Source: Haliotis rubra (lineage: Eukaryota). From it: a stretch of 64,000 nt of DNA. The notes beneath the pieces are model-generated. The model did no database searches and was not told where the DNA came from. It saw only the letters and a program-made list of their open reading frames with translations. The position numbers and the translations under genes are program-made. The stretch covers positions 620,001-684,000 of the forward strand of contig NW_025767086.1 in assembly GCF_003918875.1 (NCBI RefSeq), in the 5' to 3' direction. Each line of letters opens with the position of its first letter. Positions within the stretch are counted from its first letter, which is position 1. Positions 1 to 36,700 of the stretch are shown one piece after another.

Positions 1-1
1 C

Positions 2-569
2 ACACTTATCATACCATCGGGGTATCCTCTGTCAGGGGAGGTAACTCTGACTGACATCAAGGGACATTCGGGTACAGACCTAACAGACTTGCAGGTAATA
101 TAATTAAAATCTACAGAAATTCTCAATGTATCAGTATCATGTCATGTCAATAAATCAGTCCATCAGTTTCTATAGTTTAGATAGTGGAGCCGGGTCCTTC
201 AGCTTTAAACATAAGTGCTGTTGTAACAACTCTTTGAATCCGTATGTTACAGCAGGGTATTGTCTTCGCTAATATACATTAATGATCTCACTGGCGGGCA
301 TTACGGCAGAACCATGCTAGAAGCCTCTTACACCTGTAGTCTCATGTTTACCTCTGTACCATAAGACTGCTGTAAAGAATGAGAGTTTCAGCTACCGTAT
401 TGTCAAGGCACCCAAGCTTTGTATGTCAGTTTTAATATTAACAGTATGGATGGTGTGGTGCCTGCCCTCGAGACTGACCAATATCCTGTTTCTTCCCCAG
501 CCAGCAGGGTGTGAGAGGGGCTTGACTGCCTGGGCCGAGATGCTGGAGGAGAAGTTCGGGCGGCCATGA
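2..569 (+). CDS. 3' end (last two coding exons) of an unidentified gene entering from the left edge
   Basis: Exon <2-94 reads TLIIPSGYPLSGEVTLTDIKGHSGTDLTDLQ and ends at a CAG|gtaata donor (phase 0). The acceptor ttcttccccag| precedes exon 501-569, PAGCERGLTAWAEMLEEKFGRP*. AATAAA follows at ~633. Product not recognised. Confidence 0.5.
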
Positions 570-1670
570 TCACGTCACATCACAGCTGTACAGACATTAC
601 ATTGTAAATATCATCACTTTTGTAGATATGGCAATAAATGACAACTCAACCATGAAAGTACTGTTTTATTTAGGTGTTTGAAATAACAGGGAATCCTACA
701 GTGTGTGGAATCTTGGAACCCCCTAAATCTTGACTTTGGTTTCATTTTGTAAACTGTTTGTTCCAGTTTACAGTTGTTTACAGACAGTGTGGTCATGTAG
801 GGGCAGTAAACTTGCTACACTGCTCCATTCACATGAACAGGGCATTACTGGGTGGTCAGTACTAGGTCTGGTGCTGATACATTACACAAGCGAAGGGATG
901 AAAAGCAGGATAGATATTCAAGTCATTCAATTCATGTGAATTGTAGATTTTAACCGATATTTTTAACTGAAGTTCTGATTTTCTTCTGCCTTCCATCTAT
1001 GAATGACATACAGCTCCCAAACGTGCGATGATATAGCATCAATAAATTGAAGAAAAATGTGACACAGATTGTTCACCTGGAACCCTTCACAAATTGGACA
1101 GGTTTATCACTTAATGTCATAATAAAATAAAGAAGTTGTTATTCATAAAGTATTATAGTTTTTTCACTTGAGTTAAGTAAACCTACATTCAATACCTCAT
1201 TGTAGATACAGTTTTCAAAGTAAGAGCATGAAGGCCGTGTTGGAAACTACATACATGTAATCTATTGGTCAGCTGATAGTGGTTAAAGTTATGTTTGTCT
1301 TGCAAAGGTCTAGGTTCCATTCCTCGCATGGGAACACCATTTGAAGCCCACTTTTGGTGTCAATTGCCATTAAATTACTGGAATATTACTTAAAATGCAG
1401 TAAAAGCAAACTAAGTCATTGTCAGGTTAACATTTTCATTCATAGCTGGGCAACTCATGGAAACAGGAACTTTGTGAGGGCACCCAGTGAGATGCAGTTT
1501 TCCACTAGAAGCCAAGACTTTTCTATTTGTTATCAGTTTGTGAAGGGTTCAATACTGGCTGCCCAATAGTTCAAGGAACATCATGTGAGAGTCCACACGT
1601 GACAGAAGATTATGGCGCATCAGGAAATAGATAAGAAAACAATATTTCCAATGTTGTGTCTGCTGTACTT

Positions 1671-4600
1671 TCACTCCTCCTCGTCTTCCTTGTCCTTCAG
1701 CAAGTAGAGCTTACAGTCAAACACACGTTCCTTGGCCCCGACCTTCTGGCGGAACAGCTGGGCCTGCCTCCAGGCCGTGGTGCCAGAACCCCCGCTGACT
1801 GTGGCTTCCAGGACTATGACCTGGCTTCTCTTCATGTTGATGGAGCGGGTTTTGTACAAATATTCACCTGGGGCAGAGCAGTAGATTATTTAGAACAGTA
1901 GACAATAATCAAATTGTCAAGCTTTTCTTCATCTCAACATAAAACTGAAATTGTTACTGTGAAATGAGGTTAATTTGGGACCTGGCTCACCACAAACACT
2001 CCCTGTGTGTCAATCACTGATTTGCCACATGATTTTACTTTGAATCTGCTTTGGTTTGATTATGTTATATTCTCCATATCTCCTACCTTGGTGTGTGACA
2101 GATTTGTCATCAGCATAGATTTTCCAAACAACTTGACCATCTCCATATTTCTTGCATTTAGCCATCAAAGCCATCTTCTGTACACACATCCCCGAGTCTG
2201 TAAAATAAAAAATTGATATTAGGGTTGTAACGTTTTATAAATGAATCAGCTAGATTTTATTTGGTTCAAGGTAATGCAGTTTGCATCAATACAGTCTCAG
2301 CCGCACAATCAGCTTGTTTGAGGCTCTCAAAAACACGTAAACATCCCAAAATGTGCCCCATGCATGAGATTGAGTATGGTTTTACACTGCTTTAGCAATG
2401 TTCCAGCAATATCATGGAGGCGGACTCTCCCTGCATGAACACCCACAACTTGTGAATCAGTTTTAAAGTCAAGGAGAAAAATGTATTGGAAATGCATTGT
2501 TTTTTGAACTTAATAAGAAGCACATGTTTTTATTCGTCTGTGTTAGAAAGGCAAAATGTGCTTCAGAAACAGCTTTGTATCGACTCCCAAGATCGCTTTT
2601 TGTTTTACATACAAAACCAAGTGGTAATATATAATAGATCGATGGATGACATAAGATCACATAACTAAATGCTAGGCAACAATAATAGTTATGATTTGAT
2701 GAAAACGGACACATGATTTATTGGGGATGCATCCGTTTGTTTTGTTTTGATGAACCCACAACAGCCTGCAGCTCAAACTGAATATTAGGTTTATATGTCG
2801 GAGCCAAGTCATGCTTCACATTCCTCAAATTCCGTATGTCCAGTCCCGGGATCAAGAAGACAAGAAGGACACCAGTATCCCATTTTTGTCCACTATGAAT
2901 GAAGTACCCAAACGACGTGGAAAGTAACTCTACCACTGATTTGTCCAATCGAGAGTCTAATATATTCAGGGCGTCATCGTGGGTCTGAAATGTTTCACTT
3001 ACCTGTTAGATCAATCTTCCACCTATAGACCGCCTCATTTCGACCTTCCTCTCGGGCCCAGTACACCATCCCCTCATCCACCTCCCGCTGTGCTCCCTCG
3101 CTCTGGTACAGTCCACTCAGCAGACCCTTTATGTCCGTACCAGACGATTTCCGGTGATAGGTGTCTTGGTCACAAAAGTAGCGGAGCTGGAAGAGTTGCA
3201 TCTTTTTCTCGAGGGTAGTCAGACGGTACACCATTGTGTAGGCGGAGTTCTGGAAAACACGAAGTTGAATAAAGAATGTCATAGGGAGCTCTGGAAAACA
3301 CAGACCAGAATAAAGGATGTCGAAGAGAGTTCTGGAAAACACAGGACTGAATAAAGAATGCCATAAAGAGTTCTGGAAAGCACGCGATAGAATAAGAATG
3401 CCAAAGGGAGTTCTGGAAAACACGGGACAGACCAAAGGAAGTCAATCGGAGTTCTTGAAAATACAGACCAGAATAGAGAATGTTATAGGGAGTTCTGGAA
3501 AACATGGGACAGAATAAAGAATGTCATAGCAAGTTCTGGAAAACACAGGATAGACCAGGGAGTGTCATAGGGAGTTCTGGAAAACATGGAGCAGTATGAA
3601 AAGTATCACAGTTAGGTCTGGAAAATGCAAGATTCATACAGTTGAATGTGATCATCTATACTGACGTACAGGACTGACTCAACACCAAGAGGGCCGCCCT
3701 TCCCGCCTTCACGACACGTCTGGTATCGTCAGACGATGACATCCAAGATCGCGTGCAGCTCTGAGTAGTGAAGGGGAAGGTCATTGCTATGCATGGATGG
3801 TCCAGTGTCACCGATAATGTTTCAACAGCATCCTAGCCGCGAATAGGTGCAATATTGCAGAAACGACTTAAAGAAGAACTTCCACTCACTCACTCACTTA
3901 ATCTCAAACAGCATGCAGTTTACTGCACCCACCATATGCAGTTTGGCTTCAAAGGGGTATGTATCAGTATCAACAAATGACTGCTTGAACAGGTGCGCGT
4001 CCTTCCACGTGCCCCCGTGTATCTCGGCAATGATCGTGATACTGCTGTAGCCCTGGACGTCCACGGTGAACGTTGACAGCAAGTCGGCAGCTGGAAGAAA
4101 ATATGAAGGAGGTATCAACAACTTGGATTAACTCAACTATATAGACACATTTACAATGACCCTGAAACCAACGAGAAATCCCTTTTTACCGTCTAATGTC
4201 TGTGACTTGTCACCGCAGACGATCTTCCAGGTGACTTTGGCTTCTCCTGTGGCGTGACTCACAGCTCGAAGTTCAAGACTTTTGCCATGGACACCGGTTC
4301 CTGAAAACAATTAGATGCGCGAGACGTGGAATCAGATGACAAAAATAACATTCCCTAATATCAACTTTCAAAGTTAATTCACAGCGCACTTTTGCAAAGG
4401 GATGTCAACGAACCCTAGAGAAACCAAACTAAAGAAACCTCTTTTGAGGTTTCAGATGCTTACAGTTAGTGAATGTTGTTAAAACTGTAACTGATCGAAT
4501 CAAGACCAGACACACTCGCCCGTTAAAGCATGAGCGATGGTCTGTACAATCAGCACACAGTTATACACAAATAAATTGAACATCCGATGCCTAATTTTGT

Positions 4601-5019
4601 CGGACTACGACAAGCGACAAGAGATTCCAAGCAACTACTTTGATCCAAAATCCTAAAGGTGAAGTCCTGAGACGAATTGACGCTTAGAGTGTGCATGCAT
4701 TGGTGTAAAAAATCTGAACGCAATATGACGTTTGATTTCTATATTTTGAACCTTCCAGGTCGATCTTCCATGCAATGGAAGAGGTTTCCTGGTCCTCCTG
4801 ACGTGCAAGAAAGGCGCACATAGCATCTTGGTCCTCGTGACGGTACATCCGGGGCTCTCCATAAGTCAGGTTGCGCCATCCAGTGTTCCTCCTTGTTGTA
4901 GCAGACGACACCCGCTCATACATGTCCTTGGCGCAACTGTACCGGAAGTGGAACACGTGATCTTGGATGTCATCGTCTGACGGTACTAGACGTGTCGTGA
5001 AGGCGGGAAGGGCGGCCAT
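1671..5019 (-). CDS. Tandem double PAW-domain protein (PNGase C-terminal mannose-binding-like domain x2), ~363 aa, NGLY1-derived paralog with no PUB or catalytic domain
   Basis: Exons 5019-4752, 4300-4190, 4090-3933, 3249-3003, 2197-2087 and 1867-1671 total 1092 nt, open, all GT-AG. Repeat 1: ..VFHFRYSCAKDMYER..AFLARQED..WKIDLE|GTGVHG..VTWKIVC..|..GGTWKDAHLFKQ..PFEAKLHM. Repeat 2: ..LFQLRYFCDQDTY..MVYWAREEG..WKIDLT|DSGMCV..VVWKIY..|..GGSGTTAWRQAQLFRQ..VFDCKLYL. Both align with the NGLY1 PAW exons, with the same phase-1 introns and a 111-nt middle exon. An alternative model is two single-PAW genes (5019-3894 and 3234-1671). Confidence 0.8.
3241..3630. repeat. Minisatellite, ~10 copies of a ~41-bp unit (gggagttctggaaaacacgggacagaataaagaatgtcata-like)
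   Basis: The ctggaaaa core recurs at 3250, 3291, 3332, 3373, 3413, 3454 (variant), 3495, 3536, 3577 and 3618. Confidence 0.9.
3650..3755 (+). repeat. Inverted duplicate of the 5' end of the double-PAW gene (partner 4954-5062)
   Basis: gatcatctatactgacgtacaggac..caccaagAGGgccgcccttcccgcc..ccaagatcgcgtg is the reverse complement of 4954-5062, with about 4 substitutions and a 3-bp deletion. Confidence 0.9.
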
Positions 5020-5282
5020 CTTGGTGTTGAGTCAGTTGTCCTGTACGTCAGTATAGATGATCCAATTGATCTGAGTCAATGAACAACAATAGAGGAAATA
5101 TGAGGAATGTATATTGCACTACATTTCTGAATCGATAATTTGCTCATGAAAATATTTTTATGCAGTTTTGAAATGCTTTACCGTTCTCCGTTTACGACAC
5201 TCTTACAACGTGTAGTCCTACACTGAAAATGTAAATCAGTACAGTCTACCTATCGCACTTGGACTGTGGGAGACGCTAAAGT

Positions 5283-5490
5283 TTGTATGTTTGTTTGTTG
5301 TTGTTTGTTTAACGTCGCACCAAATGACATGGTCTCAAAATAACCCAGTTTCGACCAGATAAACCAGTGATTAACATAACGAGTATCGAGATAAGTAACA
5401 CGATGACAATCAAACAGGACAGCGCAGGTGTGCTCGGTCGCCCCTTACGACAAGCACGTGCTATTGAAGACTACTTCTACCCGAGGAAAC
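5283..5490 (-). mobile_element. Degenerate SINE, family A
   Basis: Diverged match (..gaccagataaaccagtgattaacataacgagtatcgag..gtcgccccttacgacaagcac..) to the copies at 14699 and 52343, with a (tttg)n tail. Confidence 0.55.
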
Positions 5491-5834
5491 GCGACAGTAA
5501 GAGGCTTAGAGAAAGTTACGTCAGAACACTCCGTTCGTTCATTCAGGAATGAAAGCTTTTTAACACCGCTGTAAGCAATATTACAGCGATACGCACCTAC
5601 AGAATACACTGGATGATACATACCAGTGGTTGAAAGCTTGGATACCAATCCACCCATGAGGTGTTTATTACGGGTGCCACAAGCAAGTAAGGATATGCTT
5701 ACTGGTATCATCACTATTGTGACTGTGATTCATGAACTCATGATGCAGTCGGAAATGTACTATGGACTATGCTTTTACCAGAGGTATCTTACGTCACTTT
5801 CATTTACAACCCGAACCCGTTTAGTCTGTTCTTA

Positions 5835-5983
5835 GAGTGAGTGAGTTTGTGAGTATGGTTTTACGCCTCTTTTAGCATTATTCCAACACGGCGGTGGACA
5901 CCACAATTGGGCTTCACACATTGTCCCCATTTGGGGTCTTCGGCGTGACGAGCGAACGCTTTAACCACTAGGCTACCCCACCG
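5835..5983 (-). mobile_element. tRNA-derived SINE, family B
   Basis: Reverse complement has the head ggtggggtagcctagtggttaaagcgttcgctcgtcacgccgaagacc and a (actc)n tail. Confidence 0.8.
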
Positions 5984-6297
5984 TGAGTATGAGATACTGG
6001 AGATCTATCCTAATACGAAAGCCCACACTGCTTAAATATAAGCGATAGTCTTTCTTATCTTATGGTAATGCACGAATATACTACACTACTATGGGACACA
6101 CATACCAATACTGAACATGAGATGTGAAACGTGACCGCCAGAAAATCTCAGTTGTCTGCCGAAAATACAAGGAACACTATATAATTTTCTTTATCTTTCA
6201 TTCAAAGATATTTGTTTTCATTAATCTTGATTCCCAGCTTCAATGAAATGATAATAATACTAACATAGTATTTTACAACTGAGCGCAGATAGACATA

Positions 6298-7776
6298 TAC
6301 TGAAAGCCATTTAAAACGCAATTGGTATTTGTTGTCCTGGAACTTACAAAAGTTCTATTGTATATTTTTTTCCTGCGATACAGAGGATGTAGGGATAAAA
6401 GGTTGTTATTCTGACCCATGTCAAGCTCGAGTCCCAGAGCATTCCTCTCATATGAACTTTGATGCTTAAAACCAGGGATAATCTACAGCACGTCTTCTAT
6501 TCTCCCTGTTAAAACTGAACCTTTGACATTTCTCGTAAACACAACCACATTCATGAAACACGTGTTGCACGTGCATTACCTGCACCCAGGCCCTTGAAAA
6601 GCACAAGTAATTGTGAAACTCAATCACTTTGAGAAAATGCCACGCTTGACACAAGACGAAAGGAATCAGGCTATTGGTATGGTCAGTCAAGGTGCTTCAG
6701 ATGTGATGATTGCCAGGCAGTTTAATGTGCATCCATCCACTGTTGGTCGAATCAGACAATGTTTTCGGGACACCGGAAGTGTTGCTGATCGTCCGCGACC
6801 TGGTGCACCACCTGCGACGACAGCTCGACAGGAACGAGTTTCACACTTGCGAAATCGGTTCCAAACAGCTGCTGATACGGCAAGGAGGACAATTGGGACA
6901 AGACAACGTCATGTCAGCGCCCAAACGGTGCGGAGACGCCTTGCTGTCTTCAACATCCGGTGTCGTCGCCCGTACCGTACCGTGGTCCAACCTTATTGCA
7001 TCGCCACTGACTTGCCACACAGCGATAGGCAGCTAATGGGACCAATCTTGCTAACAGGCCATAGCGAGATGTCATATTTTCCAGGTCATTAATCCAGGTT
7101 TAACGTATCCTTTGCAAACGGATTTACCGACGTCGAGGCGAAAGACTAGCTAAACTGTGTCCTTCAATGCCAACTTCCGATCCCAGATGGTAGTGGTTAA
7201 CGGCAATCTGAATGCTCAACGTTTTGAGGACAATATCATTCGTCCGGCTGTACTCACAATGATGGATCAACATGGCGGTCATAACCATTTTGTGTTTCAG
7301 CATGATAATGCAGCCAGGGTAACAATGGATTTGTTTTAAATAATGAGAATGTTCGTGTGATGGACTGGCCTTAATTGTGCCCAGACATGAATCGAGCATC
7401 TGTGGAATGAATTTGGACGGCGAGTTCGAAATCAACTTGTGCCACCAAGGACAGTTGCTGAATTGACACAGGCCCTTCAACATCACTGGCAGACCATCCC
7501 ACAGCTATTCCTGAGACATCTGTGTCTTTCAATGCCTCGAAGACTGCGAGCATGTCTTGCAGCGCACGGTGGACACACGATATTGATTGCAAGTGACCCC
7601 TTCTTTGTTTGATGTCGTTGTTGCGTCACTGATGTTGTTGTTGATTGGACATTTTCAGATGAAATTATTCACAGATGTTCAATTAAAACATATCTGCCAG
7701 TTACATTTATATATGTTGACATTTGTGTGGGTAAAGAAAGTATGAATGTCAAATTGCGTTTTAATGACTTTCAGTA
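6298..7776 (+). mobile_element. Tc1/mariner DNA transposon, full length but decayed
   Basis: TIRs tactgaaagccatttaaaacgcaatt / aattgcgttttaatgactttcagta, flanked by TA. Broken transposase: MPRLTQDERNQAIGM HTH region, FQHDNA, IEHLWNE and GGHTRY pieces lie in different frames. Confidence 0.9.
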
Positions 7777-8709
7777 TATATGCGAGAATACTAATGTTAG
7801 TGGTGAAGGACAAAAGTGTGTACACGAGATTCTGTCAAAGTAAACGGTTTTTTTTTGCGAACACTAAAAACATGTCAACCATTCCGATTAATTTAAAATG
7901 TATGCATTAATACCATGATGTTGAACCTTTGTATCACGTTACAATACATGCCACATTTCTGAAATCGGGCAAGCTGCTATGTGGCATTGCAGAATAGAAA
8001 TGTCACATACATTACAGATAAGACATTTATAATTCACATATTTTAGATGATTAGGGTACGGTGTATCTGCGTTTCGATCTGTTTCAGACTGTTCTTTATA
8101 ACGCGACAGGAATACAGCCAGCGATAATGGCCACATCGTTTGCATCAACTGTGATGCTTGGGACCAATATGCTTGTTTTAAGTTCATGTTACCCATAAGC
8201 TTAAGATATGTATGTATGATTTATCTGTTAGTTTAAATTTTGAAACGCAAATTAACGTTTTAGCCTGAGGCTTCTATATTTAGTGTACAGCAGTAATCTT
8301 TTTCTGTTATCCACATGTATCTCTGCGCCATGTTTCGAAAACATAAATCGACATTAGATAAGCAATTTAAACTTATTACAATGACTTATGTGAGTAGTTG
8401 TTCGGAGAAGAAAATGAAAGTACCTGGAGATTCTTGCAGTTATTGGATCGTCAGCATATCAGTAAGGAAGTTTGCTTTAGCTCCACTCAGGGGACGTTTG
8501 GCAGAGCGAGGCCTTCCTGTTCTTCCCTAACAATGACGGAGAACACGCGCTGTGGCGAAGTCTCGCCTATATTTGTATGCACCATGAGATCTACAGACGT
8601 GACATGCTGCTATGTGCTCTGCATTCGTCGGGTAAGAAATATTTTGCCAACAACTGTGTGCTGAATATAATTCTATGACCACAGATGGAGACAACTATAA
8701 AACTATATA

Positions 8710-10200: not shown

Positions 10201-10357
10201 NNNNNNNNNNNNNNNNNNNNNNNNNNNNNNNNNNNNNNNNNNNNNNNNNNNNNNNNNNNNNNNNNNNNNNNNNNNNNNNNNNNNNNNNNNNNNNNNNNNN
10301 NNNNNNNNNNNNNNNNNNNNNNNNNNNNNNNNNNNNNNNNNNNNNNNNNNNNNNNNN
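10201..10357. other. Assembly gap (N run)
   Basis: 157 consecutive N. Confidence 1.
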
Positions 10358-22436: not shown

Positions 22437-23192
22437 CATGATTCAACACTCGCGGCAGTGCTGTGCTCATGAGTTTGTGCGTTGTACGGTGTCGGATAAC
22501 AAAGTGTGGAACGCAGCTTATCGTAAACTGGTACCATGTCCTAGTTGCGCAACTTGGACACGGTGACTGTCTGGACTTTGTGCAGCAGTTGGTGGATTTA
22601 GCTCCCTTACACTACTGTGCTCACACTGTATTTGTCACTCAGTGACCCCAAGCTGCATGAAACCGCTAATGATATTGCTTTCGCATGGGCGAACGGTGCA
22701 TAACAGGTATTTCTGGGACGTCTATATACGTTTTATATAAACTCTCCTACCCAGAGTTGCGTTCTATGTCATCACTGCGCGGGAGTATGTTTTAGATGAA
22801 CATTCCTTGAATGTCTGAACAAAGAGATCCATAGATCGAAATGGCATAGCCCATGTCTGGTGTCCCAATCGTATTATTGTTGGAATATTGCTAAATCGAC
22901 GCAAGACCATATCTGCACTTTCCTGGCCGTCATTATAATACTGACTGTGACGGAAAGATGCATATTTGTATTCATTCATTTCATTAAGTGTTACTCGTAT
23001 CAGCTAAATTTATATTATTGCCAGTGATTTGATGCTGCGTTTTAAATTATTAATAGTCAACTGCCACTGAGCCTAGGAAGGCCGAAGGAAATAATCGTAC
23101 TCACTGCAGAGACATATGACGCAACACTCCTGGGGCTAAACAGGGATAATCTACATATATATAGTCTCCCTGGGCTAAATAAGAATAACTTT

Positions 23193-23521
23193 TGAGTGAG
23201 TGAGTGAATGAGTTTAGTTTACGCCGCACTCAGCAATATTCCAGCTATATGGCGGCGCACAGGCCCCCACTGCGGGTCAGAAAATCGGGCCTAGTTTATC
23301 GATTTTCTGACTGGCAGTGGGGGCCTGTGTGGCGGCGGTCTGTAAATAATCGAGCCTGGACCACACAATCAAGTCATCAACAGCATGAGCATCGATCTGT
23401 GTAATTGGGAACCGATGGCATGTGTCAACCAAGTCAGCAAGCCTGACCACCCGATACCGTTAGTCGCCTCTTACGACAAGCATGGGTTACTGAAGGCTCA
23501 TTCTAACCCGGACCTTCACGG
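23193..23521 (-). mobile_element. SINE family A carrying a nested micro-MITE
   Basis: Full copy from (gagt)n to gaccttcacggt, interrupted at 23258-23329. Confidence 0.88.
23258..23329. mobile_element. 72-bp palindromic micro-MITE (hAT- or P-like) with 8-bp TSD
   Basis: Perfect 16-bp TIR cacaggcccccactgc / gcagtgggggcctgtg, inner gtcagaaaatcg / cgattttctgac, perfect TSD tggcggcg at 23250-23257 and 23330-23337. Confidence 0.85.
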
Positions 23522-27669: not shown

Positions 27670-27851
27670 TAGTGAGTGAGTGAGTGAGTTTAGTTTTACG
27701 CCACACTCAGCAATATTGCATCTATATGGCGGCGGCCTGTAAATAATAATCTGGAACAGACAATCCAGTGATGAACAGCATGAGCATCGATCTGCGCAAC
27801 TGGGAACCAATGACATGTGTCAACCAAGCCAGCGAGCCTGACCACCCGTGT
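27670..27851 (-). mobile_element. 5'-truncated family A SINE
   Basis: (gtga)n tail through cctgaccacccg, flanked by aacaaatagt. Confidence 0.85.
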
Positions 27852-33744: not shown

Positions 33745-36700
33745 TTACGGTGATGCCCCAGGACTGGACCGGTCAGATATTCCATCACTGTTGATATCTA
33801 TTTTAGGCTGTGGTCGTTTCTTGAGCATTCCAGGTTCAAACTCAGGGTGGCGTCGAGCATGTTTGTTCAAATGATCACTACGCATAAAGCGTTTTTCACA
33901 GATTGGACATGAGAACTTCTTTTCACCTAAAAAATAATAAAAAAAGCACCATACAATCAGAAACAATTCTGACGTCTCCGGTAAACATGCAGCAAAACAA
34001 AGTGAAACATTCTAGGATTTATGCAAAACAACACATAGAAATTCACCAGTTTGATCAAACCCAAAACAAGAAGTCTCTAAACTGACATGCTGCAGATATC
34101 TAGGCTGTGGAGCAAAGAGAAAGGTAGGTGGCTTGGATTTGACTATTTATAGAACGGGATTCATATCCACAGCCCCACCCTGGTCGGTGATAGCAGCTGA
34201 GTTATCCCCATCTGTTTCCACAGTTATACCATAAGGCTTAAAGTCTTACATTCTAACAGATACAGCATAAATCCACTAGCAACAGCTGAACAGCTTAAAA
34301 GCATCAGTTTTCATATACAATTTTCCATTGACTTAACTTCAGTTTTACCTTACCCTAGTTTTCCCTTGGCATATTTTAGCCTGACTGTATTTGATTCACC
34401 ATGTTTGACCTATTACTAGCTGTTTAATACTCTTCTAAATGGACTTGTGGCTTCCAAAATATAAGGACATCAACAGATCTAAGCATCCATAAGATAATGA
34501 ACACAACACAGCTAAAGAATATTGAGTTAATTCAGATTTGTTTGAAATGTAAATCCAGTATTGAGAATACAGAAAGCTGGCTTACCTGTGTGAGTGCGTA
34601 TGTGTCGTGCAAGTTCATCAGATCGGGCAAAGCGTTTCTCACATCCATACCAAGTACATGGGAATGGTCGTTCACCTGTGGATAAACACACAGATTAATC
34701 ACCCTGATGCAATGGGTACATAAAGCTTTTTCCTGTTAGATTCTGTAAAATGTCACATAATTACAAGTTGATTATTTAACAAGCTGATGTTTTATCACAT
34801 GAGGTGAAGAGGTAAGTGGTTAAGTATTTCAAAGAGCCTGAAGAAACATCACACAATCTGATTCAGGCCAACAGTACGTGAATCATTAGACAAGTCCTCT
34901 CAAAAAGCCATGGATACAAATTGGCAATTGCACTCTACACCTTCACTGTGTGAAGACAAATATTTGAGTACAATGATGTCCCATGAACAGTTTCACATTT
35001 AACCCAACTCCTTAAGATGCTAATAAGAATTTGGACAACATTAATTTGTAGGAAGACATGACAGCATTGGTTCAACAGATTATGGTTACATCTCACCTTT
35101 AAATATGTGTACTGTCACTTTCGAAGTAACAGGACACATATGACAATAATGCAAATAAAACCATTCAGATGTAAAATCACCCAAAGTTTATAAAGGCAGC
35201 TGTTGACTTGTGACTTTTCAAAACATACCTATACATACACTGGACCTAATCAATGTACAGGACACTAGTACTAGCTGAACATCTATACAAAGTGATTGGC
35301 TATATTTGATGTGTTTATTAGCCCTGTGTGATGCATTTAGTACATGAAGACTTCATAAAAATGCATATAACATGTTACAAACCCCAAGGCCAGGCTATTC
35401 CTGCTAAACATATTACTATTTCTATCAGCAGATTTATTTATTGGAGCCAAAAGCCATGCACAATAAAAATCAATAATAATATTCCTCATCTGACCATATG
35501 TTCCACAGTTGATGTATTAAAGAATAATACTGTTAAATGTAGTGGAAAAAGTAGAATGGATCTTTGTAATAATAAGTACAAAGCACTGTTGGTGCCTGTA
35601 GACATACAATCTTGGTAACAGATGAAACAACGCCTTCTTGGACAGGTGAATACTTTCATCTATAGGTAAGGTAACCACTGAGTGTTTGACAAAGACGCAG
35701 TGTGCAGCCACGGTGTTCGGACAGACTGAACAGGCCTTAATTAAATATTATATTCAAAACGGAAACATATTCAATACATGTGTTAAGTATTATTTCAATC
35801 TTAGAGAAGTTTGGCCAGGTATTGTTTTGAATTAATTTGAAACTATAACTAAAATAAGATGTTGTTTAATTAGCATACATCCTTAAAAATATTCATTACA
35901 GAGGCAGACAAAAATCTCATGTCTGAAGAACTAACATGTTTCACTAAATTCAGATAAACATGAAAGCTATCTCCATAAAACAAAAGAAAATTAACATGTT
36001 AACAATTTGTAAATAATACGTTCCAGGATGCATGGATAGACATATATCTTTCAGAATAAAACAGCATGTAGTTCTCAAAAACAGTTGACAAACAACCAAT
36101 ATTGCCAAATGACTATTTGTAACAGATCTGCTACACAGACACTGAAACAAGTATATCCAATACCGCAAATACAAGTTTTATATATTCAACAACTTCAGAT
36201 TACAGCAGTTCCGAAATATGAACCAAGTCTCTAGGCTCCTTTTCATTATATTTAACTGAGATAATTTAACTTTTGTTTCTTGGTAAAATATGTTCATTTC
36301 AGAGATTAGAAATCAGTATAATTGTTAATCTGTCAAGACATCACACATAAGCTAGTGTGCATTCCTACACTTCCTTTGAGTGGTACACAAGCCCTGTACA
36401 ACTAGGGTAAGTTAGTCATTAGTGACACATTGCTCTCAGCTCAGTAGCAGCAGTTGGTGACCCAGGGTCAAGCAAGCGCCACAAGGAGGCAGCACAGTAA
36501 CTGCTTGTACACATATCAGCTGGGCCACACAGATCAGTGTGACAGACAGCTATCATGTACAGTGGAGGCTCCTAAGCACAGCTGACAGTGTGGAGGCGGG
36601 AGTATGGAAGGTGCCCTACAGGAAGGTGTGGGGATACCAGATAACTGCTGACATTCAGTGGATGTAGCTGCTCAAATCCTCAGTCAAACTTAATTGTGAT

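Follow-up and report, generated by a model that had tools for sequence, protein, structure and literature searches.

The window analysed here is a 64,000-nucleotide (nt) stretch of the genome of the abalone Haliotis rubra, within which all positions are counted. Its minus strand carries, between 5019 and 1671, a six-exon gene for a protein composed of two PAW domains, referred to below as the double-PAW gene, together with the upstream gene for the PNGase NGLY1, from which the double-PAW gene is likely to derive. NGLY1 is a medically important enzyme, and PAW is its only dedicated mannose-binding module. The exons of the double-PAW gene and the intron that separates its two repeats are the following, all exon boundaries being GT-AG and a slash marking the splice position:

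4752..5019, minus strand: exon 1, with the ATG at 5019; opens PAW repeat 1 and ends at the phase-1 donor GAAG/gt; has a counterpart in three congeners
4190..4300, minus strand: exon 2, the middle exon of repeat 1; 111 nt, phase 1 to phase 1; 111 nt in all four Haliotis species
3933..4090, minus strand: exon 3, closes repeat 1 with the final residues FEAKLHM; phase-0 donor CATATG/gtgggtg
3250..3932, minus strand: intron 3, separates repeats 1 and 2; 683 nt in the window
3003..3249, minus strand: exon 4, opens PAW repeat 2; phase-1 donor ACAG/gtaagt
2087..2197, minus strand: exon 5, the middle exon of repeat 2; 111 nt
1671..1867, minus strand: exon 6, closes repeat 2; acidic tail KDKEDEEE, stop codon TGA at 1673-1671

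The exons measure 268, 111, 158, 247, 111 and 197 nt and the introns lie in phases 1, 1, 0, 1 and 1. The open reading frame (ORF) is intact across exons 1 to 6 and comprises 1092 nt, that is, the 363 codons with undisturbed frames and splice sites that had been claimed in the original prediction, which was made from the letters of the window alone. At the junction of the repeats the encoded protein reads FEAKLHM/NSAYTMVY. The predicted product would be a soluble protein of ~41.6 kDa with two PAW beta-sandwich domains and a short linker.

Translations of the exons match the Pfam PAW profile (PF04721; gathering cut-off 31.4 bits) colinearly and in two rounds. Repeat 1 is matched in exon 1 (profile positions 28-104, E 2.7e-16) and exon 3 (151-196, E 7e-4), repeat 2 in exon 4 (24-103, E 8.4e-12), exon 5 (107-139, E 6.5e-3) and exon 6 (151-194, E 3.4e-8), and exon pieces of the window exceed the cut-off with 60.5, 45.8 and 34.0 bits. 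The two repeats are 30% identical to each other (E 2e-20), and with the PAW portion of the neighbouring NGLY1 each shows ~30-35% identity. The ortholog of Haliotis asinina, a protein of 363 residues of which 18 differ from the window product (95% identity), was used as a proxy for the whole-protein Pfam scan and for structure prediction. Its scan yields two PAW stretches (206.7 bits), as anticipated in the original prediction, and PAW is its sole Pfam domain. The claim that the protein contains two PAW domains and nothing else is thereby upheld: neither a PUB domain nor a transglutaminase core is matched by Pfam in the double-PAW proteins of H. asinina and H. cracherodii. As had also been foreseen, the N terminus, MAALPAFTTRLVPSDDD, shows no hydrophobic core of a signal peptide when judged by hydropathy. 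The highest 19-residue Kyte-Doolittle mean of the protein is 1.1 and falls within a beta strand, so that by this measure no membrane segment is present. Taken with the PAW-only content and the descent from NGLY1, the absence of signal and membrane segments suggests that the double-PAW protein is cytosolic.

The AlphaFold2 model of the H. asinina ortholog, computed from an alignment of orthologs and PAW domains, shows the two beta-sandwiches that had been expected, both with the same strand order (mean predicted local distance difference test score (pLDDT) 88.1; predicted template modelling score (pTM) 0.61). Repeat 1 modelled alone reaches a pLDDT of 92.3 and a pTM of 0.88. The top Foldseek matches of the full model are the structures 2G9G and 2G9F of mouse PNGase's C-terminal domain (target-normalised template modelling (TM) score 0.85-0.90, root mean square deviation (r.m.s.d.) 1.5 Å). 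Both domains superpose closely on 2G9F, with a Z-score of 26.2 and an r.m.s.d. of 1.4 Å over 172 residues for repeat 1 and a Z-score of 26.0 and an r.m.s.d. of 1.4 Å over 176 aligned residues for repeat 2 (residues 180-357; VIA-align). The structural matches that follow PNGase reach a Z-score of only ~9 and comprise carbohydrate-binding modules, the sugar-binding domain of Fbs1 and other jelly rolls. From the moderate pTM of the full model it seems that the two PAW domains are not fixed in their orientation to each other.

The NGLY1 gene of the window ends upstream of the double-PAW gene and comprises the following exons:

22398-22177, minus strand: NGLY1 exon encoding the PUB domain (Pfam PUB)
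about 20743-20417, minus strand: NGLY1 coding exon between the PUB exon and the large exon
19703-18500, minus strand: large NGLY1 exon of 1.2 kb, encoding Transglut_core, Rad4 and PAW profile positions 1-104
17952-17842, minus strand: middle PAW exon of NGLY1; 111 nt, phase 1 / phase 1
16883-16711, minus strand: last exon of NGLY1

The distance from its stop codon to the double-PAW ATG, which lies downstream, is 11.7 kb, and both genes are on the minus strand, in agreement with the predicted location of ~12 kb downstream of NGLY1 on the same strand. The arrangement recurs in H. asinina, where NGLY1 likewise neighbours the double-PAW gene on the same strand, 10.5 kb upstream of it, which bears on the synteny check that the original prediction had proposed. 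Both repeats retain, as claimed, the two phase-1 introns of NGLY1 and its 111-nt exon, the human counterpart of which is reported to measure 142 bp (PMC9102325). Exons 1 and 4 are truncated copies of the large NGLY1 exon; they lack PAW profile positions 1 to ~23, including the opening segment S-x-x-A-W-R-x-A-R-G-E of the Pfam profile. The description of the repeats as copies of the three PAW exons of NGLY1 thus holds in that two PAW units probably come from NGLY1, but needs correction in that the first PAW part is the 3′ end of the exon encoding the catalytic core. Compared with the PAW domain at the C terminus of PNGase/NGLY1 (2G9F, 2G9G and 2I74 in mouse), the abalone protein shares the fold and the Pfam match and, with the NGLY1 gene nearby, the two phase-1 intron positions and the 111-nt exon. 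It differs in having two PAW domains instead of one, in lacking the opening profile segment and in lacking both PUB and the transglutaminase core, whereas the true NGLY1 nearby possesses Transglut_core, Rad4 and PUB. Between the window and H. asinina the large NGLY1 exon is 97% identical, and the NGLY1 PAW domain (91% identity) evolves much faster than the catalytic core.

Adjacency, common strand and the shared 111-nt phase-1/phase-1 exon argue for a tandem duplication of the 3′ part of NGLY1, and since introns are retained, the duplication would have occurred at the DNA level and not by retro-copying; the double-PAW gene is therefore likely to derive from NGLY1 in this way. The two repeats share their starting point within the domain, and this suggests a truncated first copy that was later duplicated internally. 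In the proposed sequence of events, a breakpoint inside the large exon would have produced a three-exon PAW unit, this unit would then have been duplicated internally, and both copies would have diverged fast at first before being kept by purifying selection.

The double-PAW gene can be followed through the genus. When a profile built from exons 1 and 4 is searched against 1.84 billion representative proteins, the sole strong match is a protein of H. cracherodii (XP_071098778.1, 360 residues, two stretches, E 8.5e-77), named 'uncharacterized protein' in RefSeq. The H. asinina ortholog bears the same name, and that of H. rufescens (XP_046329617.2, 360 residues) is called 'PNGase-like', a name that fits poorly a protein with neither catalytic core nor PUB. 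Exons of the three congeners, rebuilt from the genomic loci so as to translate exactly to the RefSeq proteins, measure 259 or 268, 111, 158, 247, 111 and 197 nt, and the six-exon structure is common to the four species. The annotated intron 4 of H. asinina has a GC donor (TGACAG/gcaggtga) where the window has GT. No ortholog turned up outside Haliotis in protein searches, few vetigastropod genomes being annotated, and the next match is a krill protein (E 2e-18). The gene is thus already annotated in RefSeq for three congeners, though uncharacterised and once misnamed.

Pairwise Nei-Gojobori estimates among the four Haliotis species give ratios of non-synonymous to synonymous substitution rates (dN/dS) of 0.12-0.24 for the whole coding sequence; repeat 1 by itself ranges from 0.11 to 0.28 and repeat 2 from 0.09 to 0.21, and dS reaches 0.66. 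When the window is compared with H. asinina, dN/dS is 0.12 for the double-PAW gene, 0.19 for the NGLY1 PAW domain and 0.04 for the NGLY1 core. Purifying selection thus acts on both repeats, no less strongly than on the parental PAW domain, and the claim of selection instead of decay is borne out in both halves of the gene. A fifth genome, represented by genomic contigs of a relative or haplotype that is ~96% identical, shows six synonymous and two non-synonymous differences in exon 6. The strong divergence from NGLY1 (about 30% identity), the missing enzyme part and the loss of several conserved PAW residues could be taken as signs of a pseudogene, the locus then consisting of decaying, non-functional duplicate fragments of NGLY1. 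However, the ORF and every splice site are intact in four species, the replaced residues are nearly all identical across these species, the folds are predicted with high confidence, and both the low dN/dS at such values of dS and the excess of synonymous changes in the fifth genome are at odds with decay. This explanation, rejected on the selection analysis, is very improbable. A processed, retro-copied pseudogene is likewise ruled out by the presence of both phase-1 introns in both repeats and by the dN/dS of 0.09-0.28.

We judge it likely that the double-PAW locus is one conserved protein-coding gene of Haliotis, with a function that we infer in part. Several observations concerning its expression, ancestry and ligand weigh against this view. 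Among the sequencing runs searched, no RNA-labelled run contained the locus, the runs containing it being genomic DNA, and the protein collection, searched with the full ortholog and with the exon 3/4 junction, yielded no transcript-derived fragments; the full ortholog retrieved RefSeq proteins alone, and the junction no candidate. The RefSeq models of the three congeners may be partly ab initio and not independent of one another. The protein tree, with its unresolved backbone and long stems, does not allow the repeats to be placed. With 87 full-length NGLY1 PAW domains as the conservation reference, repeat 1 keeps the consensus residue at 26 and repeat 2 at 32 of the 45 sandwich columns with a conservation of 85% or more, 13-19 being replaced. 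The residues conserved in the family include the motifs Y..D.Y.R, E.DW.MVY.AR, WKFD and AWQH.QLFRQ. Among the residues lost is the Trp of the motif E-x-D-W-K-M-V-Y, invariant in the 87 NGLY1 domains, which has given way to Ala or Ser in repeat 1 and to Glu in repeat 2. The remodelled residues also make it less certain that the protein binds the same ligand as NGLY1.

As to ancestry, the repeat 1 and repeat 2 clades each receive 100% support in the protein tree, on stems of ~2 substitutions per site. Approximately unbiased (AU) tests do not reject a clade of repeats 1 and 2 (p 0.72), nor do they reject uniting this clade with the NGLY1 of Haliotis (p 0.69) or with that of all molluscs (p 0.69). 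Because the backbone is unresolved, the proposed origin from the local NGLY1 rests on adjacency and intron structure.

The phase-0 join from 3933 to 3249, on which the unity of the gene depends, had been claimed in the original prediction and belongs to the best gene model. It is annotated in three congeners (H. asinina, H. cracherodii and H. rufescens), and its splice sites are conserved: the donor of exon 3 (CATATG/gtgggtg; CTTATG in H. asinina) and the acceptor of exon 4 each occupy the same position in the four species, despite a 17-fold range in the length of intron 3 (683 nt in the window, 990 in H. asinina, 1807 in H. rufescens and 11622 in H. cracherodii). No in-frame ATG precedes residue 6 in exon 4. 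Codons 1-2 of this exon vary freely (N/D/E/K and S/P), as in a linker, but codons 3-5 (Ala-Tyr-Thr) differ between two Haliotis clades only synonymously, at third positions, GCC TAC ACA in one and GCA TAT ACC in the other, which argues that the sequence upstream of the first Met of exon 4 is translated. Reading through the donor into intron 3 leads in the window to a stop after 12 codons, at 3894-3896, and the read-through tails of the four species, 9-28 codons in length, are not conserved. This stop had been placed in the tail of a short interspersed nuclear element (SINE); ~65 nt at 3836-3901 are indeed 75% like 23192-23256 and 27671-27733, although the support for that assignment is weak. 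Conserved splice sites and synonymous-only changes make it very probable that exons 3 and 4 are joined in a single gene; isoforms other than the joined transcript may exist in addition. Of 37 words sampled from the stretch of exons 2-3, small RNA-like assemblies of two related organisms, from four studies, contain 2-3, which hints weakly at expression in relatives.

Two repetitive features lie within intron 3, the first of which includes the exon 4 acceptor:

3244..3636, minus strand: 41-nt minisatellite; its last unit is the exon 4 acceptor gttttccag/AAC
3632..3755, plus strand: inverted copy of the start of exon 1 and of ~60 nt upstream, 84-95% like 4954-5080

Alternatively, predictors may have merged two adjacent single-PAW genes, the first with repeat 1 ending inside the so-called intron 3 and the second with repeat 2 starting at Met 185 from an intronic promoter. 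In favour of this, all four species have an in-frame Met six codons into exon 4, H. cracherodii has an intron 3 as long as 11.6 kb, a single minisatellite unit provides the exon 4 acceptor, and the run and protein searches brought no transcript evidence for the junction 3933>3249. The fixed positions of donor and acceptor across introns of such different length, the synonymous-only change of the three codons just before the Met and the short, unconserved read-through tails all contradict it, as does the presence of the join in three RefSeq annotations. One of these, the H. asinina model, contains the intron with the GC donor, and Gnomon normally accepts a GC-AG intron only with transcript support. 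Two separate genes are therefore unlikely.

Every 41-nt unit of the minisatellite carries gttttccag/AAC, that is, a near-copy of the acceptor followed by sequence resembling the start of exon 4. Were splicing to take a unit farther upstream as the acceptor, the frame would shift, each unit being 41 nt long. The minisatellite stands at the same place in the four Haliotis species (in the last 250-600 nt of intron 3 in the congeners), with ~4-14 units, and it is shorter in the genomic contigs of the ~96%-identical relative or haplotype. Its constant place and differing unit numbers indicate that it is old and length-polymorphic.

With respect to the ligand, the window's own NGLY1, which is outside the tally, departs from the consensus at only one of the 45 conserved PAW columns. 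The replacements in the double-PAW repeats are nearly all identical in the four Haliotis species, which argues that the losses are old and fixed and do not reflect ongoing decay. In place of the motif W-Q-H-x-Q-L-F-R-Q, repeat 1 now reads W-K-D-A-H-L-F-K-Q and repeat 2 W-R-Q-A-Q-L-F-R-Q. It appears that the fold has been kept and that the two repeats have each had their surface remodelled in a different way, which fits a changed or split specificity. Since many conserved PAW residues are replaced, and nearly all alike in every species, the specificity of the double-PAW protein has probably changed relative to that of the NGLY1 PAW domain.

The protein would act as a non-enzymatic, bivalent binding protein of the cytosol, and its putative ligand would be a glycan or glycoprotein related to the high-mannose substrates of NGLY1. 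Binding of high-mannose glycans may be inferred, and roles as a lectin, decoy or sensor are hypotheses. A different outcome would be a genuine protein of two PAW domains that has given up N-glycans as its ligand, the sandwiches having been re-used for protein-protein or other binding apart from the NGLY1 pathway. The substitutions common to the species fall on the most conserved positions of the family (W-Q-H-x-Q-L-F-R-Q and E-x-D-W), and both repeats sit on long stems in the protein tree, which speaks for such a departure; the fold, nearly identical to that of a mannose-binding module (r.m.s.d. 1.4 Å), points the other way, and we consider this alternative unlikely.

The abalone protein does not stand alone in the absence of an enzyme, and the novelty originally claimed for it does not hold as stated: orthologs are already in RefSeq, which goes part of the way towards the refuting condition that the original prediction had set, and two-PAW or PAW-only proteins occur in several other animal phyla. 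A protein of the krill Meganyctiphanes norvegica (CAL4065419.1) combines two PAW domains with an N-terminal C2H2 zinc finger of autophagy-receptor type (PF18112, E 1.7e-6), a Saccoglossus protein has two PAW domains and ankyrin repeats, and a protein of the goby Mugilogobius has two PAW domains and the UniProt label 'PAW domain-containing protein'. Three PAW stretches are found in a hypothetical protein of the cockroach Blattella germanica (872 residues, no catalytic core) and in a Globodera protein, and Patiria, Ptychodera and Amphiura have one-PAW proteins that carry long tails. The tree groups the two krill PAW domains as sisters, does the same for the two Saccoglossus domains, and pairs the goby domain with goby NGLY1 as its sister; these placements indicate that PAW-only or tandem-PAW proteins arose several times. 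In the literature searched, the 14 papers using the term 'PAW domain' concern NGLY1, save for a Caenorhabditis elegans gene list and an unrelated locomotion paper, and no study of enzyme-less PAW proteins was seen among them.

The proteins of krill, Saccoglossus, goby, Patiria, Ptychodera and Amphiura resemble the abalone protein in that PAW is detached from the enzyme, often in tandem, and in being annotated as uncharacterised or hypothetical. Unlike those of krill and Saccoglossus, the abalone protein has no partner domain, and the origins appear to be independent. Gene position and intron structure indicate that the abalone gene arose separately, from the local NGLY1. The double-PAW protein is hence not a new kind of system but an instance of an enzyme-less PAW architecture that recurs in other phyla. 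A functional analogue may be seen in Fbs1/FBXO2 (1UMI, 2E32), a cytosolic lectin of the SCF ubiquitin ligase whose beta-sandwich recognises high-mannose N-glycans on substrates of ERAD (endoplasmic reticulum-associated degradation). Its sugar-binding domain is structurally only weakly similar (Z about 8), and Fbs1/FBXO2 belongs to a different family, with an attached F-box and no sequence relationship to the abalone protein.

To judge from the krill protein, whose zinc finger is of a ubiquitin-binding type, PAW domains separated from the enzyme may be combined with ubiquitin or autophagy adaptors, and the fusion hints at a link to these pathways. One may speculate, although we hold this to be doubtful, that PAW domains detached from PNGase form an unrecognised and recurrently arisen class of metazoan cytosolic glycan sensors. 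A linked PAW pair would then bind N-glycans that come into contact with the cytosol, whether on ERAD substrates after retrotranslocation, on damaged endomembranes or on invading microbes, and would recruit, compete with or shield glycans from NGLY1 and the machinery of ubiquitin or autophagy. The conservation of a PAW-only protein beside NGLY1 across Haliotis, with parallels in krill, hemichordates, echinoderms, fish and nematodes, indicates that the PAW module can work alone and makes such proteins natural candidates for cytosolic lectins or regulators of deglycosylation. For abalone genomics, the analysis corrects a misleading 'PNGase-like' name and provides a checked gene model with selection evidence.

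Other repeats occur in and around the double-PAW gene. In H. asinina, H. rufescens and H. cracherodii, intron 3 lacks the inverted copy of the start of exon 1, which marks the copy as a recent lineage-specific insertion; it is found also in the contigs of the ~96%-identical relative or haplotype. The copy is probably neutral, although it could pair with the 5′ end in the pre-mRNA; a functional role for the inverted repeat was rejected since it is missing from the three congeners. The 11.6-kb intron 3 of H. cracherodii contains long satellites of 30-36 nt, rich in CCT/GAG and in both orientations, at intron positions ~4466-5590. In a related genome, contig depth is 100 to 100,000x that of single-copy sequence at 5740-6135, 2250-2450 and 1088-1281, so that the introns and flanks of the double-PAW gene hold high-copy repeats. 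The element at 5740-6135 has seven more partial copies in the window, and its loose ends resemble a tRNA-like SINE head. An Rfam scan of 1-8000 gave no match. A run of 157 N occupies 10201-10357, between NGLY1 and the double-PAW gene. Farther away on the minus strand, two ORF pieces at 33748-33966 and 34530-34691 match zf-C2H2 (Pfam E ~1e-6) and contain the KLF/Sp-like linker TGE(R/K)PF; they are probably exons of a gene for a zinc-finger transcription factor.

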